From Ranitomeya imitator (lineage: Eukaryota), in NCBI RefSeq assembly GCF_032444005.1, contig NC_091288.1:172732001-172796000 (forward strand): a stretch of 64,000 bases of DNA, written 5' to 3'. The notes under the pieces are model-generated. The model did not search any database. It saw only the letters and a program-made list of their open reading frames with translations, and had not been told where the DNA came from. Positions 29,671 to 64,000 of this stretch are shown piece by piece. The stretch's first letter is position 1. Each line of letters opens with the position of its first letter. The translations under genes were made by a program, and so were the position numbers.

Positions 29671-30761
29671 CAAAATCAATTACCCATAACCTGTAATATT
29701 ATATTTGTAATGAAACGCATCCAGGCCCTCCTTGAAACTTTTGTATTAAATCACCTATTACAACATCTTGTGACAGAAAGTTCCATTGTCTCATTTCTCT
29801 TACAGTAAAGAATCTGCATATGTGATGATTAAACCTTCTTTATTCTGAATGTAGACCATGTTACCATTACAGGCTTGTTATAAAAAGATACTTAGAAAGA
29901 TCTCTTTTCTGTCCAATAATAACCTTGGTTGCTTTTCTCAAGCTCAAGCCCTTCTAACTTTGGTTGCATCTACTCAAGTTCAGTTATGTCTTCCTTATAG
30001 ACTGGAGACCAAAATTGTACACAGTATTCTAACTGTGGACGCACTAGTGACTTGTATAGAGGCAAAATCACATTCTTGTCATGGGATGCCTCTTTTAATG
30101 CATCCCATGATTTTATTTGCCTTGGAAGCAGCTGCCTGGCACTGGTCATTAAAGTTGAGTTTGCAATCCACCCATACGCTCAAGTCTTTTTCAGTGACAG
30201 TTTTACCCAGTGTTCTACAATTCAGCACAAAATTATACACTTAATTTCCTCTGCAAAAGAGAGCATAGCCATGCATTAATCTACATTAAACTTCTATTGC
30301 CATTTCTCAACTCAAGCCTCCAGCTTATACAAATAATCCTGTAACATTAAATTATCCTCCTCTGTGTTTACTACCTTGAAGAGTTTAGTATAATCTGAAA
30401 TATTGCAAATTGGCTCTTCTGAGAGGCATATTTGCATATGTAATTTTCCAGAAAAGCATTGCAAGGCTTATAAGCCTCCTCACCTTGGCATGCCAGGGTA
30501 GGCATGTCACTCTTCACAAGGATGGACATTACCCCTTAGATCCCACTGAAAATATTGAAATTCTATATGCCCTGTTTAAGGTCATTAATAAGTATGATAA
30601 AAAGAAGAGGGCACAATACTGACCCCTGTGGTACCCCACTAACATAGTAACATAGTAACATAGTTAGTAAGGCCGAAAAAAGACATTTGTCCATCCAGTT
30701 CAGCCTATATTCCATCATAATAAATCCCCAGATCTACGTCCTTCTACAGAACCTAATAATT

Positions 30762-31479
30762 TTATTTATCCAAAATATGATCCAACTATAATTTGTGCTA
30801 TAAGCTAACTATCCATTCCGTCCATATCACATATAACTGTTAACCAGTAGTGACACAGAAAAGCACAACCATCATTATTTAACCCAATAAAATCATTTTT
30901 ATTAAACAATTGAAAACATACATCATTAAAAATAAGACAAAAAAACAGTCCACACTTCTTCAGGGGGCGAAGAAGAAGTGTGGACGAAACGTGCGTCGGG
31001 TTAGAGTGACCGGACACTCTTCCTTACACTCAGCAGTAAGTATTGTGTTTTCTTACTGCCGCCCGGCAATATATCAATATTTAGTTCATTCAATTAGGAG
31101 AACAACACTTAGAATTTTGGAGGTTATTGTCGCAGCGGTGGTTATCTTACTTTACATGTAGCAGACATGGGCGGGTAATACCCTATTATAATGTGGATTT
31201 CTTGTAGTCAATACCACGGATACCTAAGAGGGTGATTTGATTCCAGCGCCCAGCTGAGTAGTTTGAAGCTTACTGTTGTATAAATACATGCTGTGTGGTT
31301 TATGAGTTGAGTAGTTCATAGGTCCCTCACATTTGAGATACCTGTTTTTTTGTCTTATTTTTAATGATGTATGTTTTCAATTGTTTAATAAAAATGATTT
31401 TATTGGGTTAAATAATGATGGTTGTGCTTTTCTGTGTCACTACTGGTTAACAGTTATATGTGATATGGACGGAATGGAT
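30762..31479. mobile_element. Penelope-like insertion with inverted arms
   Basis: 14-bp TSD AGAACCTAATAATT at 30748-30761 and 31480-31493; 30809-30947 is the reverse complement of 31343-31481; hammerhead-like motif at the inversion junction. Confidence 0.75.
30945..31002. ncRNA. Hammerhead-like motif split across the inversion junction
   Basis: The inverted arm gives CCCC-CTGAAGA-AGTGTGGAC and the forward arm gives GAAGAAGTGTGGAC-GAAAC-GTGC-GTC-GGG. Together they reconstruct a minimal type I hammerhead. Confidence 0.55.
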
Positions 31480-31757
31480 AGAACCTAATAATTGTATGAT
31501 ACAATATTGTTCTGCTCCAGGAAGACATCCAGGCCTCTCTTGAACCCCTCGACTGAGTTCGCCATCACCACCTCCTCAGGCAAGCAATTCCAGATTCTCA
31601 CTGCCCTAACAGTAAAGAATCCTTTTCTATGTTGGTGGAAAAACCTTCTCTCCTCCAGACGCAAAGAATGCCCCCTTGTGCCCGTCACCTTCCTTGGTAT
31701 AGGAAGGATAGATGCCCTGCTTAAAAACCAGTGTCATACAATGACAGCGGTATTCAA

Positions 31758-41948: not shown

Positions 41949-44900
41949 CTAGGTGTCAGCCGGGCAGGGTGGGGCAAAAGATTTTGAAATCCAGTTGTGG
42001 TTCATTTTAATGAAGGTTAGATCATCTACATTTTGGGTAGCCAGACGAGTCCTTTTTTCTGTTAGTATTGAACCTGCAGCACTGAATACTCTTTCTGATA
42101 GGACACTAGCTGCCGGGCAAGCAAGCTCCTGCAATGCATATTCTGCCAATTCTGGCCAGGTGTCTAATTTGGATGCCCAGTAATCAAATGGGAATGACGG
42201 TTGAGGGAGAACGTCGATAAGGGATGAAAAATAGTTTGTAACCATACTGGACAAATGTTGTCTCCTGTCACTTTGAATTGATGCTGCAGTACCTGTCCTG
42301 TCTGCGGTCATAGAAAAATCACTCCACAACCTGGTCAGAAAACCCCTCTGTCCAACGCCACTTCTGATTTCTGCCCCTCTAACACCTCTGGTCTGCTGGC
42401 CCCTGGAGCTCGTGTGAGAACGATCACGGGCGCTGTGTGCAGGGAATGCCAGAAGCAAACGGTCAACAAGAGTTGATTGTTTTGTTGCTAATATTAGTTC
42501 CAAGTTCTCATGTGGCATAATATTTTGCAATTTGCCTTTATAGCGAGGATCAAGGAGGCAGGCCAACCAGTAATCGTCATCGTTCATCATTTTTGTAATG
42601 CGTGTGTCCCTTTTGAGGATACGCAAGGCATAATCCGCCATGTGGGCCAAAGTTCCCGTTGTCAAATCTGCGGTTGTGCTTGGTTGAGGGGCAGTTGCAG
42701 GCAAATCTACGTCACTTGTGTCCCTCAAAAAACCAGAACCCGGCCTTGCCACGCCACCAATTTCCCGTGCCCCCGGGAAAGCTTCCTCATTAAAAATATA
42801 CTCATCCCCATCATCCTCCTCATCCTCCACCTCCTCTTCGCCCGGTACCTCGTCATGTACACTGCCCTGACCAGACAATCGCTGACTGTCATCAAGGCTT
42901 TCCTCTTCCTCTGGTGCAGACGCCTGATCCTTTATGTGCGTCAAACTTTGCATCAGCAGACGCATTAGGGGGATGCTCATGCTTATTATGGCGTTGTCTG
43001 CACTAACCAGCCGTGTGCATTCCTCAAAACACTGAAGGACTTGACACATGTCTTGAATCTTCGACCACTGCACACCTGACAACTCCATGTCTGCCATCCT
43101 ACTGCCTGCCCGTGTATGTGTATCCTCCCACAAAAACATAACAGCCCGCCTCTGTTCGCACAGTCTCTGAAGCATGTGCAGTGTTGAGTTCCACCTTGTT
43201 GCAACGTCTATGATTAGGCGATGCTGGGGAAGGTTCAAAGAACGCTGATAGGTCTGCATACGGCTGGAGTGTACAGGCGAACGGCGGATATGTGCGCAAA
43301 GTCCACGCACTTTGAGGAGCAGGTCGGATAACCCCGGATAACTTTTCAGGAAGCACTGCACCACCAGGTTTAAGGTGTGAGCCAGGCAAGGAATGTGTTT
43401 CAGTTGGGAAAGGGAGATGGCAGCCATGAAATTCCTTCCGTTATCACTCACTACCTTGCCTGCCTCAAGATCTACAGTGCCCAGCCACGACTGCGTTTCT
43501 TGCTGCAAGAACTCGGACAGAACTTCCGCGGTGTGTCTATTGTCGCCCAAACACTTCATAGCCAATACAGCCTGCTGACGTATGCCAGTAGCTGCCCCAT
43601 AATGGGAGACCTGGTGTGCAACAGTGGCAGGTGCGGATGGAGTGTTTGTGCGACTGCGGTCTGTGGACGAGCTCTTGCTTCTGCAGGAGGACGAGGAGGA
43701 GGAGGAGGAGGGGGTGCGAACGGCTACAGACAACTGTTTACTAGACCGTGGGCTAGGCAGAACTGTCCCAAACTTGCTGTCCCCTGTGGACCCTGAATCC
43801 ACCACATTTACCCAGTGTGCCGTGATGGACACGTAACGTCCCTGGCCATGCCTACTGGTCCATGCATCTGTTGTCAGGTGCACCTTTGTGCTCACAGATT
43901 GCCTGAGTGCATGGACGATGCGCTCTTTAACATGCTGGTGGAGGGCTGGGATGGCTTTTCTGGAAAAAAAGTGTCGACTGGGTAGCTCGTAGCGTGGTAC
44001 AGCGTAGTCCATCAGGTCTTTGAAAGCTTCGCTTTCAACTAACCGGTAGGGCATCATCTCTAACGAGATTAGTCTAGCTATGTGGGCGTTCAAACCCTGT
44101 GTACGCGGATGCGAGGCTAAGTATTTCCTTTTTCTAACCATAGTCTCATGTAGGGTGAGCTGGACTGGAGAGCTGGAGATCGTGGAACTAGCGGGGGTGC
44201 CGGTGGACATGGCAGACTGAGAGACGGTGGGAGATGGTATTGTTGCCGCCGGTGCCCTAGATGCAGTGTTTCCTACTACGAAACTGGTGATTCCCTGACC
44301 CTGACTGCTTTGGCCTGGCAAAGATACCTGCACAGATACAGCAGGTGGTGCGCTAAATGGTGGTCCTACACTGCCGGAAGGGATGTTGCGTTGATGACTA
44401 GCTTCATTGGCCGAGGGTGCAACAACCTTAAGGGACGTTTGGTAGTTAGTCCAAGCTTTCAAATGCATGGTGGTTAAATGTCTATGCATGCAACTAGTAT
44501 TGAGACTTTTCAGATTCTGACCTCTGCTTAAGGAAGTAGAACATTTTTGACAGATGACTTTGCGCTGATCAATTGGATGTTGTTTAAAAAAATGCCAGAC
44601 TGCACTCTTTCTAGCATCGGATACCTTTTCAGGCATTGCAGACTGAGCTTTAACCGGATGGCCACGCTGTCCTCCACCAGGTTTTGGCTTTGCCACGCGT
44701 TTTGGGCAAGATACGGGCCCGGCAGATGGAACCTGTGGCGATGTTGATGCCTGCTGCGGCCCCTCCTCCTCCTCTGCTTCAGAACTGCTGCCGCCTGCAC
44801 CCTGTTCCCCCAATGGCTGCCAATCGGGGTCAAGAACTGGGTCATCTAATAACTCTTCTTGTACCTCCTGCGCAACTTCGTCTGTGTCACCGTGTCGTTC

Positions 44901-45524
44901 GGTGGTATAGCGTTCGTGATGGGGCAACATAGTCTCATCAGGGTCTGATTCTTGATCAGCACCCTGCGAGGGCAATGTTGTGGTCTGAGTCAAAGGACCA
45001 GCATAGTAGTCTGGCTGTGGCTGTGCGTCAGTGCACTCCATGTCAGATTCAATTTGTAATGGGCATGGACTGTTAACTGCTTCACTTTCTAAGCCAGGGA
45101 CGGTATGTGTAAAGAGCTCCATGGAGTAACCCGTTGTGTCGCCTGCTGCATTCTTCTCTGTTGTTGTTTTTGCTGAAGAGGACAAGGAAGTGACTTGTCC
45201 CTGACCGTGAACATCCACTAACGACGCGCTGCTTTTACTTTTACCAGTTTCACGAGATGAGGCAAAAGAGCTAGAGGCTGAGTCAGCAAGATAAGCCAAA
45301 ACTTGCTCTTGCTGCTCCGGCTTTAAAAGCGGTTTTCCTAATCCCAGAAAAGGGAGCGTTCGAGGCCTTGTGTAGCCGGACGACGAACCTGGCTCCACAG
45401 CTCCAGACTTAGGTGCAATATTTTTTCCCCCACGACCACCTGATGCTCCACCACTACCACTACCCTCATTACCAGCTGACAATGAACGCCCCCGGCCACG
45501 ACCTCTTCCACTAGACTTCCTCAT
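41949..45524 (-). CDS. hAT-superfamily transposase (BED zinc finger, DDE RNase H-like core, hATC dimerisation domain), 1191 aa
   Basis: BED: SAVWHFF…CQKC…HRHLTTMH; catalytic motifs LTTDAWTS, VSDNGRNF and SERVFS; CLAH (CxxH); TRWNS; uninterrupted ORF. Confidence 0.97.
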   Translation of the reverse strand: MRKSSGRGRGRGRSLSAGNEGSGSGGASGGRGGKNIAPKSGAVEPGSSSGYTRPRTLPFLGLGKPLLKPEQQEQVLAYLADSASSSFASSRETGKSKSSASLVDVHGQGQVTSLSSSAKTTTEKNAAGDTTGYSMELFTHTVPGLESEAVNSPCPLQIESDMECTDAQPQPDYYAGPLTQTTTLPSQGADQESDPDETMLPHHERYTTERHGDTDEVAQEVQEELLDDPVLDPDWQPLGEQGAGGSSSEAEEEEGPQQASTSPQVPSAGPVSCPKRVAKPKPGGGQRGHPVKAQSAMPEKVSDARKSAVWHFFKQHPIDQRKVICQKCSTSLSRGQNLKSLNTSCMHRHLTTMHLKAWTNYQTSLKVVAPSANEASHQRNIPSGSVGPPFSAPPAVSVQVSLPGQSSQGQGITSFVVGNTASRAPAATIPSPTVSQSAMSTGTPASSTISSSPVQLTLHETMVRKRKYLASHPRTQGLNAHIARLISLEMMPYRLVESEAFKDLMDYAVPRYELPSRHFFSRKAIPALHQHVKERIVHALRQSVSTKVHLTTDAWTSRHGQGRYVSITAHWVNVVDSGSTGDSKFGTVLPSPRSSKQLSVAVRTPSSSSSSSSCRSKSSSTDRSRTNTPSAPATVAHQVSHYGAATGIRQQAVLAMKCLGDNRHTAEVLSEFLQQETQSWLGTVDLEAGKVVSDNGRNFMAAISLSQLKHIPCLAHTLNLVVQCFLKSYPGLSDLLLKVRGLCAHIRRSPVHSSRMQTYQRSLNLPQHRLIIDVATRWNSTLHMLQRLCEQRRAVMFLWEDTHTRAGSRMADMELSGVQWSKIQDMCQVLQCFEECTRLVSADNAIISMSIPLMRLLMQSLTHIKDQASAPEEEESLDDSQRLSGQGSVHDEVPGEEEVEDEEDDGDEYIFNEEAFPGAREIGGVARPGSGFLRDTSDVDLPATAPQPSTTADLTTGTLAHMADYALRILKRDTRITKMMNDDDYWLACLLDPRYKGKLQNIMPHENLELILATKQSTLVDRLLLAFPAHSARDRSHTSSRGQQTRGVRGAEIRSGVGQRGFLTRLWSDFSMTADRTGTAASIQSDRRQHLSSMVTNYFSSLIDVLPQPSFPFDYWASKLDTWPELAEYALQELACPAASVLSERVFSAAGSILTEKRTRLATQNVDDLTFIKMNHNWISKSFAPPCPADT

Positions 45525-50501: not shown

Positions 50502-53500
50502 CAGAGGCGTAGCTAGAGCTTTTGCCGCCCGGGGCTGTTCCCGAGTTTGGCGCCCCCCCCCCCTTCCCGTCTCAATACACACAAAGGTTCCCAAAAACGG
50601 TTTTCCTGTTTTGTAGAACTTAAACTGGGCCTAATGGTGTCACCCCCACATGCCACACCTGTGACTTAATACCACCACACCATGACCAGGCCACATAGTG
50701 ACCGAATAATACTACATACAAGGGACAAATACCACAACACCATTTCCAGACCACATATTACCACCACATAGTGACTGAATACTACAATACTGATCAGTAA
50801 TAAAAAAAAAAACCACAATACTATCACCATAAGTGCCAGTATTCACAGGAGATCTGTACTTAGTATGCAGTATCTGTGTAGAGGTAATACAGAGATCACT
50901 GGTGACATTATACACAGGACCTCTATATAGTATACAGTGTATAGTGTCAGTGTATAGGTAACACTGACTCACCAGTGACGTCTCTAGGTGAAGTCCTTCA
51001 TCTTTCATCCAGCACAGACCGCCATCATTCCTTCCAGCCAGGACTCGTTTCTGCAGGAAATAACACAGTTATCTCGAGCTCCGCTTGCAGAACACATTAC
51101 TTAATTTTTCACAAGTTCTACATTACATCACATGAAGAAAAAAAGGTGATATAGTGTCACTCTGCACAGTAACAGGACCGCCCCCCCATTTAAAACAGTA
51201 TACTCAAAAAATAAAATAAATACATCACTGCAGTAATAATATCCCTTAATTAGCCCCTATGGTAATAATATTCCCCACCCTGGCCCCGTTTCTCATTCCT
51301 GGCTCCAGCCATATGTTCTCGCATCCTGCCCTCATGAGTATCCATTCTACCCCATATGATCTCCACATCCTGCCCCACCAGCCTCCATCGTATCCGTCCT
51401 GCCCCATGATCCAATCCTGCCCCGTGTCTCCAATCATGCCCCGTATCTACATTCTGCCCATGCCTCAAGTCCTGCCCCCAGTGTGTCCAGCATATTACCC
51501 CCATGTTGTCCAGCAATCTGCCCCAGTGTGTCCAGCATATTACCCCCATGTTGTCCAGCAATCTGCCCCAGTGTGTCCAGCATATTACCCCCAGTGTGTC
51601 CAGCAATCTGCCCCAGTATGTCCAGCACTGCCCCCAGTGTGTCCAGCAATCTGCCCCAGTGTCCAGCCTTTCCCCAGTGTGTCCAGCAGTCTGCCCCAGT
51701 GTGTCCAGCATATTACCCCCAGTGTCCAGCATTGCCCCAGTGTGTCCAGCATATTACCCCCAGTGTGTCCAGCAATCTGCCCCAGTGTCCAGCATTGCCC
51801 CAGTGTGTCCAGAAGTCTGCCCCAGGGTCTCCAGCATTGCCTCAATGTGTCCAGAAATCTGCCCCAGGGTCTCCAGTATTGCCCCAGTGTGTCCAGCATT
51901 CTGCCCCATGGTCTCCAGTATTTCCCCAGTGTGTCCAGCATTCTGCCCCATGGTCTCCAGTATTGCCCCAGTGTGTCCAGCAATCTGCCCCATGGTCTCC
52001 TGTATTGCCCCAGTGTGTCCAGCATTCTGCCCCATGGTCTCCAGTATTGCCCCAGTGTGTCCAGCAATCTGCCCCATGGTCTCCTGTATTGCCCCAGTGT
52101 GTCCAGCATTCTGCCACATGGTCTCCTGTATTGCCCCAGTGTGTCCAGCATTCTGCCCCATGGTCTCCAGTATTGCCCCAGTGTGTCCAGCAATCTGCCC
52201 CATGGTCTCCTGTATTGCCCCAGTGTGTCCAGCAATCTGCCCCATGGTCTCCTGTATTGCCCCAGTGTGTCCAGCATTCTGCCACATGGTCTCCTGTATT
52301 GCCCCAGTGTGTCCAGCATTCTGCCCCATGGTCTCCTGTATTGCCCCAGTGTGTCCAGCAATCTGCCCCATGGTCTCCAGTATTGCCCCAGTGTGTCCAG
52401 CAATCTGCCACATGGTCTCCTGTATTGCCCCAGTGTGTCCAGCATTCTGCCACATGGTCTCCTGTATTGCCCCAGTGTGTCCAGCAATCTGCCCCATGGT
52501 CTCCAGTATTGCCCCAGTGTGTCCAGCAATCTGCCCCATAGTCTCCCGTATTGCCCCAGTGTGTCCAGCAATCTGCCCCATGGTCTCATGTATTGCCCCA
52601 GTGTGTCCAGCATTCTGCCCCATGGTCTCCAGTATTGCCCCAGTGTGTCCAGCAATCTGCCCCATGGTCTCCTGTATTGCCCCAGTGTGTCCAGCAATCT
52701 GCCCCATGGTCTCATGTATTGCCCCAGTGTGTCCAGCAATCTGCCCCATGGTCTCCTGTATTGCCCCAGTGTGTCCAGCAATCTGCCCCATGGTCTCCTG
52801 TATTGCCCCAGTGTGTCCAGCATTCTGCCACATGGTCTCCTGTATTGCCCCAGTGTGTCCAGCAATCTGCCCCATGGTCTCCAGTATTGCCCCAGTGTGT
52901 CCAGCAATCTGCCCCATAGTCTCCCGTATTGCCCCAGTGTGTCCAGCAATCTGCCCCATGGTCTCATGTATTGCCCCAGTGTGTCCAGCATTCTGCCCCA
53001 TGGTCTCCAGTATTGCCCCAGTGTGTCCAGCAATCTGCCCCATGGTCTCCTGTATTGCCCCAGTGTGTCCAGCAATCTGCCCCATGGTCTCATGTATTGC
53101 CCCAGTGTGTCCAGCAATCTGCCCCATGGTCTCATGTATTGCCCCAGTGTGTCCAGCAATCTGCCCCATGGTCTCCAGTATTGCCCCAGTGTGTCCAGCA
53201 TTGCCCCAGCCCCAGACAGTCAGACATAAAGAAAAAAAAAAAAAAGTAAAATCCTCACCTCTCCCGTTCCTAGCGCAGGTCCAGTGCAGTCAGCGTCTCT
53301 CCGGCTCTGCGACCCTCAGGACAGAGAGGCAGAGCGGCGCGCACAGTAGTGACGTCATCGCGCCCTCTGCTCTGAGACGTCGCAGAGTCAGAGGACGCTG
53401 CAGCTGCCGGCACCGCAGGAACCAGGAGAGGTGAGTATAGAGCGGGGGGCGGGGTCCGGTGGTGGGGGGAGCTGGCCCTGGTCGTGGCGGCGGACGGCGC

Positions 53501-58161: not shown

Positions 58162-61100
58162 ATGAAGACCAAGGAACACAACAGGCTGGTCCATGATACT
58201 TTTGTGGAGAAGTTTAAAGCCGGATTTGGACACAAAATGATTTCCAAAACTTTAAACATCCCAAGGAGCACTGTGCAAGAGATCATATTGAAATGGAAGG
58301 AGTATCATAACACTGCAAATCTACCAAGACCCGGCCGTCCCTCTAAACTTTCATCTCAAACAAGGAGAAGACTGATCAGAGATGCAGCCAAGAGGCCCAT
58401 GATCACTCTGGATGAACTGAAGAGATCTACAGCTGAGGTGGAACAGTCTGTCCATAGGACAATAATCAGTCATATGCTGTGCAAAAAAGAAAAAAAAAAA
58501 AAAAAGAGCATGAACCGCACATCCCAAAATCATACGTTGATCTAAAGCCGCTAGGCAAAAATTAATATAACTGAATATGAGGTTTTCAGTTTAACATTCT
58601 GATCAGACTGTATGAAGCCCACTGCCCCTTCACGGCAAACCTCGTAGTGGGTCCTAACGCTCTAACGGAGCGGAGCCGTGCAGCGCCCACCGCCACAGCG
58701 GCCATGCACCAGCAGGGCGGACGGCCTGTTGCCCCACAGCACCCATGCTGCAAGACTGAGTCCCCAAGACTCCAGACCGTGCCACCCCACCAGCACAAAG
58801 CAACAGCAACAATGGCCGCCACACAGCACCAACACCAAAATGAAAGGAGCACTTAAACTCACCTTCCTCCAGCTCTTCAGTGAGAGCCAAAATGGGCTAG
58901 ACCCCTTACTTTGCAGTCTCCTGCTAATTAAAATCACCTGAGCCAAATGGGAGGAGTGCTGGTCCAAGAAGAAGACTAGAACATGCTTTGCAAAAAAGAA
59001 AAAAAAAAAAAAGAGCATGAACCGCACATCCCAAAATCATACGTTGATCTAAAGCCGCTAGGCAAAAATTAATATAACTGAATATGAGGTTTTCAGTTTA
59101 ACATTCTGATCAGACTGTATGAAGCCCACTGCCCCTTCACGGCAAACCTCGTAGTGGGTCCTAACGCCCTAACGGAGCGGAGCCGTGCAGCGCCCACCGC
59201 CACAGCGGCCATGCACCAGCAGGGCGGACGGCCTGTTGCCCCACAGCACCCATACTGCAAGACTGAGTCCCCAAGACTCCAGACCGCGCCACCCCACCAG
59301 CACAAAGCCACAGCAACAATGGCCGCCACACAGCACCAACACCAAAATGAAAGGAGCACTTAAACTCACCTTCCTCCAGCTCTTCAGTGAGAGCCAAAAT
59401 GGGCTAGACCCCTTACTTTGCAGTCTCCTGCTAATTAAAATCACCTGAGCCAAATGGGAGGAGTGCTGGTCCAAGAAGAAGACTAGAACATGCTTTGCAA
59501 AAAAGAAAAAAAAAAAAAAAAGAGCATGAACCGCACATCCCAAAATCATACGTTGATCTAAAGCCGCTAGGCAAAAATTAATATAACTGAATATGAGGTT
59601 TTCAGTTTAACATTCTGATCAGACTGTATGAAGCCCACTGCCCCTTCACGGCAAACCTCGTAGTGGGTCCTAACGCCCTAACGGAGTGGAGCTGTGCAGC
59701 GCCCACCGCCACAGCGGCCATGCACCAGCAGGGCGGACGGCCTGTTGCCCCACAGCACCCATGCTGCAAGACTGAGTCCCCAAGACTCCAGACCGCGCCA
59801 CCCCACCAGCACAAAGCCACAGCAAACAATGGCCGCCACACAGCACCAACACCAAAATGAAAGGAGCACTTAAACTCACCTTCCTCCAGCTCTTCAGTGA
59901 GAGCCAAAATGGGCTAGACCCCTTACTTTGCAGTCTCCTGCTAATTAAAATCACCTGAGCCAAATGGGAGGAGTGCTGGTCCAAGAAGAAGACTAGATCA
60001 TGCTTTGCAAAAAAGAAAGAAAAAAAAAAAAAAAAAAAGAGCATGAACCGCACATCCCAAAATCATATGTTGATCTAAAGCCGCTAGGCAAAAATTAATA
60101 TAACTGAATATGAGGTTTTCAGTTTAACATTCTGATCAGACTGTATGAAGCCCACTGCCCCTTCACGGCAAACCTCGTAGTGGGTCCTATCGCCCTAACG
60201 GAGCGGAGCCGTGCGGCGCCCACCGCCACAGCGGCCATGCACCAGCAGGGCGGACGGCCTGTTGCCCCACAGCACCCATGCTGCAAGACTGAGTCCCCAA
60301 GACTCCAGACCGCGCCACCCCACCAGCACAAAGCCACAGCAACAATGGCCGCCACACAGCACCAACACCAAAATGAAAGGAGCACTTAAACTCACCTTCC
60401 TCCAGCTCTTCAGTGAGAGCCAAAATGGGCTAGACCCCTTACTTTGCAGTCTCCTGCTAATTAAAATCACCTGTGCATGGGTGCTGTGGGGCAACAGGCC
60501 GTCCGCCCTGCTGGTGCATGGCCGCTGTGGCGGTGGGCGTCGCACGGCTCCGCTCCGTTAGGGCGATAGGACCCACTACGAGGTTTGCCGTGAAGTGGCA
60601 GTGGGCTTCATACAGTCTGATCAGAATGTTAAACTGAAAACCTCATATTCAGTTATATTAATTTTTGCCTAGCGGCTTTAGATCAACGTATGATTTTGGG
60701 ATGTGCGGTTCATGCGCTTTTTTTTCTTTTTTGCAAAGCATGTTCTAGTCTTCTTCTTGGACCAGCACTCCTCCCATTTGGCACAGGTGATTCTAATTAG
60801 CAGGAGACTGCAAAGTAAGGGGTCTAGCCCATTTTGGCTCTCACTGAAGAGCTGGAGGAAGGTGAGTTTAAGTGCTCCTTTCATTTTGGTGTTGGTGGTG
60901 TGTGGCAGCCATTGTTGCTGTGGCTTTGTGCAGGGGGGTGGCGCGGTCTGGAGTCATGGGGACTCAGTCTTGCAGCATGGGTGCTGTGGGGCAACAGGCC
61001 GTCCGCCCTGTAGGTGCATGGCCGCTGTGGCGGTGGGCGCCGCACGGCTCAGCTCCGTTAGGGCGATAGGACCCACTACGAGGTTTGCCGTGAAGTGGCA

Positions 61101-63461
61101 GTGGGCTTCATACAGTCTGATCAGAATGTTAAACTGAAAACCTCATATTCAGTTATATTAATTTTTGCCTAGCGGCTTTAGATCAACGTATGATTTTGGG
61201 ATGTGCGGTTCATGCGCTTTTTTTTCTTTTTTGCAAAGCATGTTCTAGTCTTCTTCTTGGACCAGCACTCCTCCCATTTGGCACAGGTGATTCTAATTAG
61301 CAGGAGACTGCAAAGTAAGGGGTCTAGCCCATTTTGGCTCTCACTGAAGAGCTGGAGGAAGGTGAGTTTAAGTGCTCCTTTCATTTTGGTGTTGGGGGTG
61401 TGTGGTAGCCATTGTTGCTGTGGCTTTGTGCTGGGGGGGTGGCGTGGTCTGGAGTCATGGGGACTCAGTCTTGCAGCATGGGTGCTGTGGGGCAACAGGC
61501 CGTCCGCCCTGCTGGTGCATGGCCGCTGTGGCGGTGGGCGCCGCACGGCTCCGCTCCGTTAGGGCGATAGGACCCACTACGAGGTTTGCCGTGAAGTGGC
61601 AGTGGGCTTCATACAGTCTGATCAGAATGTTAAACTGAAAACCTCATATTCAGTTATATTAATTTTTGCCTACCGGCTTTAGATCAACGTATGATTTTGG
61701 GATGTGCGGTTCATGCGCTTTTTTTTCTTTTTTGCAAAGCATGTTCTAGTCTTCTTCTTGGACCAGCACTCCTCCCATTTGGCACAGGTGATTCTAATTA
61801 GCAGGAGACTGCAAAGTAAGGGGTCTAGCCCATTTTGGCTCTCACTGAAGAGCTGGAGGAAGGTGAGTTTAAGTGCTCCTTTCATTTTGGTGTTGGTGGT
61901 GTGTGGCAGCCATTGTTGCTGTGGCTTTGTGCAGGGGGGGTGGCGCGGTCTGGAGTCTTGGGGACTCAGTCTTGCAGCATGGGTGCTGTGGGGCAACAGG
62001 CCGTCCGCCCTGCTGGTGCATGGCCGCTGTGGCGGTGGGCGCCGCACGGCTCCGCTCCGTTAGGGCGATAGGACCCACTACGAGGTTTGCCGTGAAGTGG
62101 CAGTGGGCTTCATACAGTCTGATCAGAATGTTAAACTGAAAACCTCATGTTCAGTTATATTAATTTTTGCCTAGCGGCTTTAGATCAACGTATGATTTTG
62201 GGATGTGCGGTTCATGCGCTTTTTTTTCTTTTTTGCAAAGCATGTTCTAGTCTTCTTCTTGGACCAGCACTCCTCCCATTTGGCACAGGTGATTCTAATT
62301 AGCAGGAGACTGCAAAGTAAGGGGTCTAGCCCATTTTGGCTCTCACTGAAGAGCTGGAGGAAGGTGAGTTTAAGTGCTCCTTTCATTTTGGTGTTGGGGG
62401 TGTGTGGTAGCCATTGTTGCTGTGGCTTTGTGCTGGGGGGGTGGCGTGGTCTGGAGTCATGGGGACTCAGTCTTGCAGCATGGGTGCTGTGGGGCAACAG
62501 GCCGTCCGCCCTGCTGGTTCATGGCCGCTGTGGCGGTGGGCGCCGCACAGCTCCGCTCCGTTAGGGCGATAGGACCCACTACGAGGTTTGCCGTGAAGTG
62601 GCAGTGGGCTTCATACAGTCTGATCAGAATGTTAAACTGAAAACCTCATATTCAGTTATATTAATTTTTGCCTAGCGGCTTTAGATCAACGTATGATTTT
62701 GGGATGTGCGGTTCATGTGCTTTTTTTTCTTTTTTGCAAAGCACAATAATCAGTCATACACTGCACAAATCTGGACTTTATGGAAGAGTGGCAAGAAGAA
62801 AGCAATTTCTCAAAAATATCCCTAAAAGTGTGGTTTAAAGTTTGCAACAAGTCACCTGAGAGACACACCAAACGTGTGGAAGAAGGTGCTCTGGTCAGAT
62901 GAAATCAAAATCGAACTTTTTGGCAACAATGCTAAATGATATGTTTGGTGTAAATGCAACACAGCTCATCACCCTGAACACACCATCCCCACTGTCAAAC
63001 GTGGTGGCAGCATCATGGTTTGGGCCTGTTTTTCTTCAGCAGGGACAAAGAAGGTGGTTAAAATTGATGGGAAGATGGATGGAGCCAAATACAGGACCAT
63101 TCTTGAAGAAAACCTGTTGGAGTCTGCAAAAGACTTGAGACTGGGACGGAGATTTGTCTTCCAACAAGACAATGATCTCAAACATTAAGCAAAATCTACA
63201 ATGGAATAGTTAACAAATAAACATATACAGGTGTTAGAATGGCCAAGTCAATGTCCAGACCTCAATCCATTCGAGAATCTGTGGAAAGAGCTGAAAACTG
63301 CTGTTCACAAACGATCTCCATCAAACCTCACTGAGCTCGAGCTGTTTGCCAAGGAAGAATGGGCAAGAATTTCAGTCTCTCGACGTACAAAACTGACAGA
63401 GACATACCCCAAGCGAGTTGCAGCTGAAATCGCAGCAAAAGGTGGCGCAACAAAGTATTAA
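58162..63461 (+). pseudogene. Tc1 transposase, interrupted at 58475-62758 and frameshifted
   Basis: HTH region (ISKTLNIPRSTV, PRPGRP) at 58162; DDE motifs WSDE (~62895), QQDND (~63165) and PDLNPFENLW (~63260). Confidence 0.92.
58475..62742. repeat. Fold-back insertion: two inverted arms of a ~500-bp tandem unit (about 3.9 + 4.5 copies)
   Basis: 16-bp TSD ACAATAATCAGTCATA at 58459-58474 and 62743-62758; periods 507/509/517 (left) and 500/501/501 (right); inversion junction at about 60476. Confidence 0.95.
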
Positions 63462-63859: not shown

Positions 63860-64000
63860 GCACCACACACACACACACACACTGCATATGCCATATGCAC
63901 CATAGACACACTGTATATGACGTATGCACCATACACACACTCTGTATATGCCATATGCACCACACGCTCACACACACACTGTATACGCTGTACACAGCCT
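63860..64000. repeat. (CA)n plus a short degenerate minisatellite (…TATGCCATATGCACCA…CACACTG)
   Basis: Directly visible; runs off the window end. Confidence 0.7.

Follow-up and report, generated by a model that had tools for sequence, protein, structure and literature searches.

Introduction

Penelope-like elements (PLEs) usually insert in a head-to-head layout (PMC3846280), and a typical PLE insertion combines partial tandem copies with an adjacent inverted, 5′-truncated copy (Craig et al., 2021, PMC8557442); an optional tail of 30–40 bp at one end of the element is also described in the literature. The purified PLE protein of the anole lizard, PAc, cleaves and extends both target strands in vitro (Frangieh et al., 2024, PMC11167929); its reverse transcription starts at a fixed, internal site that does not differ between the strands and has no homology to the target, AT-rich DNA is preferred for cleavage, hammerhead mutants have no effect on insertion, and the protein is predicted to be a dimer (PMC11167929). 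Animal non-long-terminal-repeat (non-LTR) retrozymes are hammerhead-bearing tandem repeats with target-site duplications (TSDs) of >4 bp (Cervera and de la Peña, 2020, PMC7229834), and retrozymes have been argued to be non-autonomous PLE derivatives, an active retrozyme being defined by a hammerhead ribozyme in every repeat (Li, Clavereau and Pollet, 2026, bioRxiv 10.64898/2026.07.22.740005). In algae, ribozyme-free non-autonomous PLE partners form multi-copy head-to-tail insertions (PMC8557442). Here, we describe an insertion from Ranitomeya imitator that can be set beside these systems, namely a 4.3-kb fold-back array of a non-coding, ~500-bp tandem unit lying within a Tc1 transposon copy; the window, i.e., the whole stretch of DNA that was analyzed, comprises 64 kb of contig NC_091288.1 (positions 172,732,001 to 172,796,000), and all coordinates below are window positions.

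The insertion is probably the product of a single event in which a tandem repeat that is non-autonomous, non-coding, and ribozyme-free was retro-inserted by a PLE enzyme combining a GIY-YIG endonuclease (EN) with a reverse transcriptase (RT). It is a clean natural product, with an intact TSD, arms that start at the same nucleotide, and sequence variants that record the copied templates, and it bears on two long-standing questions: how satellite repeats reach new chromosomal sites, and what role the hammerhead plays in PLEs and retrozymes. New in this locus are arm variants that exclude a monomer circle as template, an RNA fold matched in polarity to the proposed template, and the absence of a ribozyme.

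Insertion site and target-site duplication

The insert spans 4,268 bp (58475–62742/3) and interrupts a decayed Tc1/Sleeping-Beauty-type transposase open reading frame (ORF). The features of the insertion site are as follows.

58162–58474, plus strand: 5′ part of the host Tc1/Sleeping-Beauty-type transposase ORF, with the left TSD copy at its end (translation and Pfam)
58459–58474, unstranded: left TSD copy, ACAATAATCAGTCATA, matching 62743–62758 at 16/16 positions and present once in uninterrupted Tc1 contigs
62743–62758, unstranded: right TSD copy, matching 58459–58474 at 16/16 positions
62759–63400, plus strand: 3′ remainder of the decayed Tc1 transposase, with frameshifts and stops downstream; the frame runs through the reconstructed empty site, and the translation of the DDE region is recognizable in frame 2

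The length of the TSD is 15 or 16 bp, one base at each outer junction being assignable to either the unit or the target. When the insert is deleted together with one TSD copy, a continuous Tc1 reading frame results (...VHRTIISHTLHKSGLYGRVARRK), and the transposase frame restored at the reconstructed empty site reads ...AEVEQSVHRTIISHTLHKSGLYGRVARRK. The left Tc1 piece matches the Pfam family HTH_SB at 53.3 bits (cut-off 43), and a match to HTH_Tnp_Tc3_2 is severed at profile position 36 of 72, precisely where the insert begins. In contigs of uninterrupted Tc1 copies from other sequencing runs, position 58458 is joined straight to 62743 and the duplicated letters occur once; thus, the 16-mer is a true target-site duplication. 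With a slash marking the nick, the nick contexts are GTCATA/CAC and ATTATTGT/CC, and neither is TT/AAAA.

Arm anatomy, start points, and joints

The insert consists of two head-to-head arms of the ~500-bp unit, with 3.94 units on the left and 4.53 on the right (~8.5 in total); the arms measure 2.0 and 2.3 kb and are 96–98% complementary. The period limit of Tandem Repeats Finder was 500, and the array is therefore absent from its output. The arms, their outer starts, and their joint are located as follows.

58475–60476, minus strand: left arm, 3.94 units (509, 507, 510, and 476 bp), with the A-rich strand on plus and hence the putative RNA sense on minus
58475–58489, plus strand: left-arm outer start, TGCTGTGCAAAAAAG, putatively the first cDNA bases primed from the top-strand nick; in unit position, it coincides with the right-arm start and the seven internal boundaries
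60475–60478, unstranded: central head-to-head inversion joint 60476/60477, passing from unit position 476 sense to 264 antisense with GC (2 nt) shared
60477–62743, plus strand: right arm, 4.53 units (264, 500, 501, 501, and 501 bp), the plus strand being U/G-rich and of the putative RNA sense
62729–62743, minus strand: right-arm outer start, (T)GCTTTGCAAAAAAG, putatively the first cDNA bases primed from the bottom-strand nick; the first T is common to the TSD (1-nt ambiguity)

The right arm is inverted, and its units counted from the outside are 501, 501, 501, 500, and 264 bp long. Both arms begin at TGCT(G/T)TGCAAAAAAG, the same base of the unit to within ±1 nt, which is the T or a neighboring base of ...AACA/TGCTTTGC...; all seven internal unit boundaries are in the same phase as the arm starts and are exact, with no added bases. 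Two random starts in a 507-bp unit would fall within ±1 nt of one another with a chance of about 0.006. Read inward, the outer ends both give TGCTTTGC..., and no poly(A) abuts either TSD. At the central joint, there is no palindrome, spacer, or duplication.

Homology to the target amounts to 1 nt at each outer junction, and the unit start resembles the displaced flanks at 6/11 and 3/11 positions, which is non-significant, since ≥7/11 has a background frequency of 0.011. Microhomology-guided targeting was rejected on these figures. Separately, the fifth base of the left arm (58479) is a G (TGCTGTGC) that is private to that unit, the other eight units having T, and the target displaced by the insert (CACTGCAC) holds a G at the equivalent offset; this G may have arisen by chance mutation or may preserve a sign of the way in which the initial bases were added.

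Much of the initial annotation of this locus is borne out by these measurements, including an insert that cleanly splits a Tc1 ORF with a 16-bp TSD (its copies are identical, and the frame is restored on removal), inverted arms of ~3.9 and ~4.5 units, and outer ends at the same point of the unit, which agree to ±1 nt. The short microhomology to the target that it reported is limited to the single nucleotide at each outer junction. It had also described the insert as having neither an ORF nor ends of the terminal-inverted-repeat (TIR) type; no credible ORF is present, but the ends are terminal inverted repeats by construction.

Unit variants and the nature of the template

Outside the A-run, units differ from one another at 4–8 positions within the left arm, at 4–10 within the right arm, and at 9–20 between the arms. 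Six substitutions and the length of the A-run (15–19 A on the left, 8 A on the right) are fixed between the arms, which are thus independent copies and not a self-copied hairpin. Unit by unit, the left-arm A-runs measure 14, 16, 16, and 3+G+19, following a fixed AAAAAAG (58992–59010 and equivalents), and the right-arm A-run is constant at 8 (62720–62728 and equivalents).

The arms are also internally mixed. In the right arm, units R1 and R3 share states distinct from those of R2 and R4 at alignment columns 312, 325, 352, and 362; in the left arm, L4 has the right-arm state at columns 190, 215, and 475, where L1–L3 differ. Further copies of the unit are available from other runs as contigs whose RNA or DNA nature is a guess. 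One-unit contigs of two of these runs (X4 and X8) have the left-arm state at every fixed site, so L1–L3 represent the genome-majority variant and the right arm a minor variant of the family.

Three simpler templates were rejected on this evidence. A monomeric circular RNA or DNA would account neither for the R1/R3 and R2/R4 types nor for an L4 that is unlike L1–L3 at three sites, and the fixed differences between the arms rule out both snap-back self-priming and a technical palindrome. For the two strands, the templates were either separate molecules or stretches lying far apart in one heterogeneous multimer. Accordingly, of the multimeric or circular RNA that had been suggested as template, the multimer is best supported, whereas the monomer circle is excluded by the mixed unit variants. 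The order of the two right-arm variants alternates (ABAB), for which the chance is about 1 in 8; a dimeric higher-order template is likely but not proven.

Implied RNA polarity and predicted fold

Read 5′ to 3′ inward from each TSD copy, the A-rich strand is found in both arms. With 3′-OH ends at staggered nicks, the A-rich strand would be the newly made one and the template would be U/G-rich, its 5′ ends meeting centrally; the same A-rich strand would run inward from both TSDs because both target 3′-OH ends were extended on templates of one polarity. The U/G-rich strand is predicted to fold strongly, with −202.4 kcal/mol for unit R2 (z −4.16) and −209.4 kcal/mol for unit L2 (z −5.69), 0/100 shuffles being as good in either case; the complementary strand gives −136.2 kcal/mol (z −1.35). 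These statistics derive from the folding tool’s own shuffles. A long hairpin is predicted inside each unit.

61892–62055, plus strand: strand-specific hairpin in unit R2 as an example, ~60 pairs of which ~1/3 are G·U (predicted RNA fold); the equivalent domain in L2 lies at 59179–59337, minus strand

Counted over the entire L2 unit, G·U pairs number 40 and A·C mismatches in symmetric loops 0, figures to be read with the caveat that the folding algorithm itself favors G·U. A decaying DNA palindrome should give both equally, so this excess suggests that RNA of U/G polarity was selected or altered as RNA. Among these near-identical units, no covariation was found in the hairpin; compensatory changes among unit variants were likewise absent, the only relevant changes being one-sided G-C to G·U replacements, which CpG decay also yields. 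Recent variants carry no footprint of adenosine-to-inosine (A-to-I) editing, with 7 A/G and 9 C/U differences on the RNA-sense strand and thus no bias. A start-site hairpin, CAUGC...GCAUG, is present in the minimum-energy fold, yet it does not exceed the shuffles (z +0.5). In the putative RNA, the start site is also closely preceded by a U-run of at least 8, which should act as a terminator for RNA polymerase III.

Ribozyme and coding content

Searches for ribozymes were negative at each level. An Rfam cmscan of the whole window returned no family at gathering score, and at E ≤ 10 no ribozyme was found in the insert or in a single unit; a pattern search for the hammerhead core recovered a sole CUGANGA motif without a GAAA partner. 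There is no type I hammerhead in any unit on either strand. In layout, the array matches those of retrozymes, with non-coding tandem units of 500–510 bp inside a 15–16-bp TSD. Thus, the earlier description of the element as retrozyme- or satellite-like stands as far as behavior is concerned: the insertion is retrozyme-like in what it does but lacks the hammerhead that defines a retrozyme, no ribozyme having been detected in the Rfam scans.

ORFs within the insert are at most 144 aa long, all mechanical and without Pfam match, and a mechanical ORF of 126 aa had no homolog in a large protein collection. No ORF encoding an RT and GIY-YIG endonuclease was found in the insert; if the element is PLE-related, it is non-autonomous.

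The repeat family and its context in the window

When the unit was compared by BLAST (7-nt words) with the rest of the window, only A-run matches were obtained, and none to a small PLE-type insert described below. Elsewhere, words of the unit occur in runs from 11 studies labeled as three organisms, and an exact 31-mer scan of metagenome contigs gave 0 matches. In run X4, a very small data set, the unit is represented by a contig of 539 nt, roughly the length of a unit extended by the word overlap, as expected of a tandem family, with a depth of 45.6 for the unit vs. 36.7 for the Tc1 family. In run X1, 5,843 contigs aligned to the unit at 90–100% identity. The unit therefore belongs to a high-copy, mostly tandem family and qualifies as satellite DNA. 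Contigs of run X1 also contain sense-to-antisense joints elsewhere in the unit (110>263, 135>53, 145>235, 183>237, 246>174, 361>146, 416>116, 473>398, and 363>158), at depths of 21–63, near those of apparently single-copy joints, which suggests that fold-back joints at variable inner positions recur in the family.

A second fold-back insertion in the window served as a comparator.

30748–31493, unstranded: small PLE-type fold-back comparator, with a 14-bp TSD (30748–30761 and 31480–31493), 140-nt inverted arms, and a one-sided 47-nt extension

Its insert (30762–31479) is 718 bp long, lies ~27 kb from the main insert, and has arms that are 100% complementary; it shows the PLE-type insertion style at work in the region. 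It had been annotated as hammerhead-bearing and of the same architecture as the main insert. The architecture holds, with its 14-bp TSD and 140-nt arms, but the hammerhead is only a sub-threshold, partial match to Hammerhead_1 (14.5 bits; gathering score 34). The comparator TSD is AGAACCTAATAATT, and both this and the main TSD contain AATAAT. The 47-nt extension is on the left only, like a PLE ‘tail’, and a 14-bp perfect stem stands beside GAAAC.

Several other features of the window were recorded. An intact ORF of 1,191 aa (41949–45524, minus strand) encodes a BED zinc finger and a hAT C-terminal dimerization domain and represents a large hAT element. At 51259–53434, several overlapping ORFs of 350–656 aa occur on both strands without Pfam match; ORFs open on both strands usually reflect biased or repetitive composition and not a gene. 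Just downstream of the host Tc1 copy is a short tandem array (63875–63962) of a 29-bp unit repeated three times.

Proposed mechanism and alternative explanations

In the proposed mechanism, a PLE endonuclease would nick both strands of the AT-rich Tc1 site, 15–16 bp apart, and each free 3′-OH would be extended by reverse transcription from one fixed site of a U/G-rich repeat RNA, without target homology. Reverse transcription would start at …CUUUUUUGCAAAGCA, in a U-rich linker adjoining the large folded domain, with GCAAAGCA as the proposed initiation site on the unit RNA. Each cDNA would traverse ~4 units of a multi-unit template, and either a pair of distinct RNAs or separate regions of a single heterogeneous array transcript would have served as templates; the cDNA ends would then be joined head-to-head via 2-nt microhomology, and repair would leave the target duplication. 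On this reading, the unit would be transcribed and would depend on a PLE for its mobility. The insertion has two features of a PLE insertion product, namely inverted, 5′-truncated tandem copies in one TSD and a fixed, shared, non-homologous start. The original suggestion, that both nicked strands primed at one RNA site by means of Penelope machinery, agrees with this geometry, with PLE biochemistry, and with the polarity of the fold, whereas its RNA stage and PLE dependence we still infer, together with which enzyme acted and how many templates were used.

Several points weigh against a Penelope-type origin. The optional one-sided tail of 30–40 bp is not present, both ends being at the same base, and the window contains no PLE ORF and nothing else that the unit matches. 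Given the U-run, read-through or transcription by RNA polymerase II must be assumed. The contigs of the other runs break at A-runs and do not confirm the three junctions of the locus. Additionally, the inversion joints of run X1 have short sides of 20–38 nt.

An unlikely alternative is DNA-templated repair, in which microhomology-mediated or break-induced copying of extrachromosomal circular DNA, or of a satellite array, extended both 3′ ends of a staggered break in the Tc1 copy and so filled it, without RNA or RT. Its strand geometry would be identical to that of twin priming, an abundant tandem family could readily supply circles, and microhomology at the outer and central joints is limited to 1–2 nt. 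However, two independent microhomology invasions would not share a start base (chance about 0.006, as above), a break with 15–16-nt 3′ overhangs itself implies a retroelement-type endonuclease, and the one-strand G·U excess indicates that RNA of this polarity was an intermediate or has a function.

It is comparably improbable that the RT came from another retroelement, either a long interspersed element (LINE) with L1-type twin priming or an R2-like enzyme; in a sub-variant, the RT would jump end to end from one monomer RNA to the next, each having a defined 3′ end. L1 twin priming is established and is reported to give TSD-flanked inversions (PMC2837659). Mixed variants within arms fit jumps between RNA molecules, the ABAB order then being a matter of chance (~1 in 8). 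A TSD of 15–16 bp is within the L1 range. However, neither TSD is abutted by a poly(A) or LINE-type 3′ tail, and the nick sites are not TT/AAAA; the A-run is internal to the cDNA-sense start, on the wrong strand for poly(A) priming. For template jumping, the exactness of all seven internal boundaries, with no added bases, is unfavorable, and there is no ribozyme or terminator that would make a GCA 3′ end, the U-run stopping 9 nt upstream of GCA. Tandem and inverted products are, moreover, typical of PLEs and not of LINE-driven short interspersed elements (PMC8557442).

A Foldback-type DNA transposon, such as Drosophila FB or Galileo, would explain the arms as long TIRs of tandem units moved by a transposase that recognizes the shared termini; in formal terms, the insert does amount to a long inverted repeat whose 15-bp termini are identical and whose interior is non-coding, and further inverted joints exist in the family. 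We nevertheless consider this origin very unlikely. To our knowledge, a TSD of 15–16 bp exceeds that of any cut-and-paste superfamily (2–11 bp; 9 bp for FB), whereas such an element should leave a short duplication of fixed length; the arms are built of whole units from their first base onward and lack a terminal sequence of their own, they bear different subfamily variants, and the strand-specific RNA fold has no role in the model. Least probable of all is an assembly or sequencing artifact (a chimeric palindromic read or mis-joined satellite array), since, although zero-spacer 2-kb inverted repeats are hard to assemble and the contigs that could verify the junctions break at A-runs, a technical palindrome would be perfectly complementary, whereas these arms differ at fixed sites and in length, and a mis-join would not place the outer junctions on a perfect TSD that restores the Tc1 frame.

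Implications

If retro-insertion by a PLE enzyme is correct, the locus would provide in vivo support for two-strand, fixed-site initiation, which has so far been seen in vitro only; a ribozyme would be unneeded for spread, and one event would have established a multi-unit array. Such families would escape pipelines in which the hammerhead is the defining feature of a retrozyme. The insertion would then be valuable chiefly because it documents, in a natural setting, two-strand, fixed-site priming and the seeding of an array without a ribozyme.

A more specific model is put forward tentatively, namely that the unit belongs to a structured, ribozyme-free satellite RNA family of ~500 nt that is retro-mobilized as multimers by a Penelope-like ribonucleoprotein (RNP), with separate template RNAs priming for the two target strands, one to each subunit of a dimeric RNP. 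Were this possibility true, hammerheads would be dispensable in vivo for PLE-driven spread of tandem repeats, multi-unit fold-back satellite arrays would be seeded in one retrotransposition event, and the 40:0 ratio of G·U over A·C could record RNA selection or A-to-I editing fixed via reverse transcription.

Comparison with known systems

Among described systems, metazoan retrozymes are alike in having non-coding units of a few hundred bp, an organization in dispersed arrays flanked by TSDs much longer than 4 bp, and highly self-paired RNA, and they are abundant in amphibians and thought to be PLE-dependent. They differ in that the present unit is without a hammerhead or other Rfam ribozyme, and so without an evident route to unit-length circular RNA.

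PLE insertions (Penelope/Poseidon, Neptune, and PAc) share with this locus the head-to-head inverted and tandem copies, the TSD, the AT-rich target, and, in the proposed mechanism, the use of both strands as primers; the present insert, however, has no RT/EN ORF, pseudo-LTR–ORF organization, hammerhead, or one-sided tail, and instead repeats a short unit ~8.5 times. Chlamys elements, such as MRC1 of Chlamydomonas, are likewise ribozyme-free, non-coding PLE partners with multi-copy head-to-tail insertions, but they occur in green algae, belong to a PLE clade having an N-terminal EN, and have 3′ ends in common with known autonomous families (PMC8557442). In the literature searched, no vertebrate counterpart of Chlamys-type elements was found.

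L1 twin priming resembles the proposed mechanism in that both target 3′-OH ends prime on RNA and the outcome is an inverted, TSD-flanked insertion joined by microhomology. In L1, however, one strand is primed on poly(A) and the other at a variable site chosen by microhomology, whereas here both arms start at one specific site of the unit and extend over several units.

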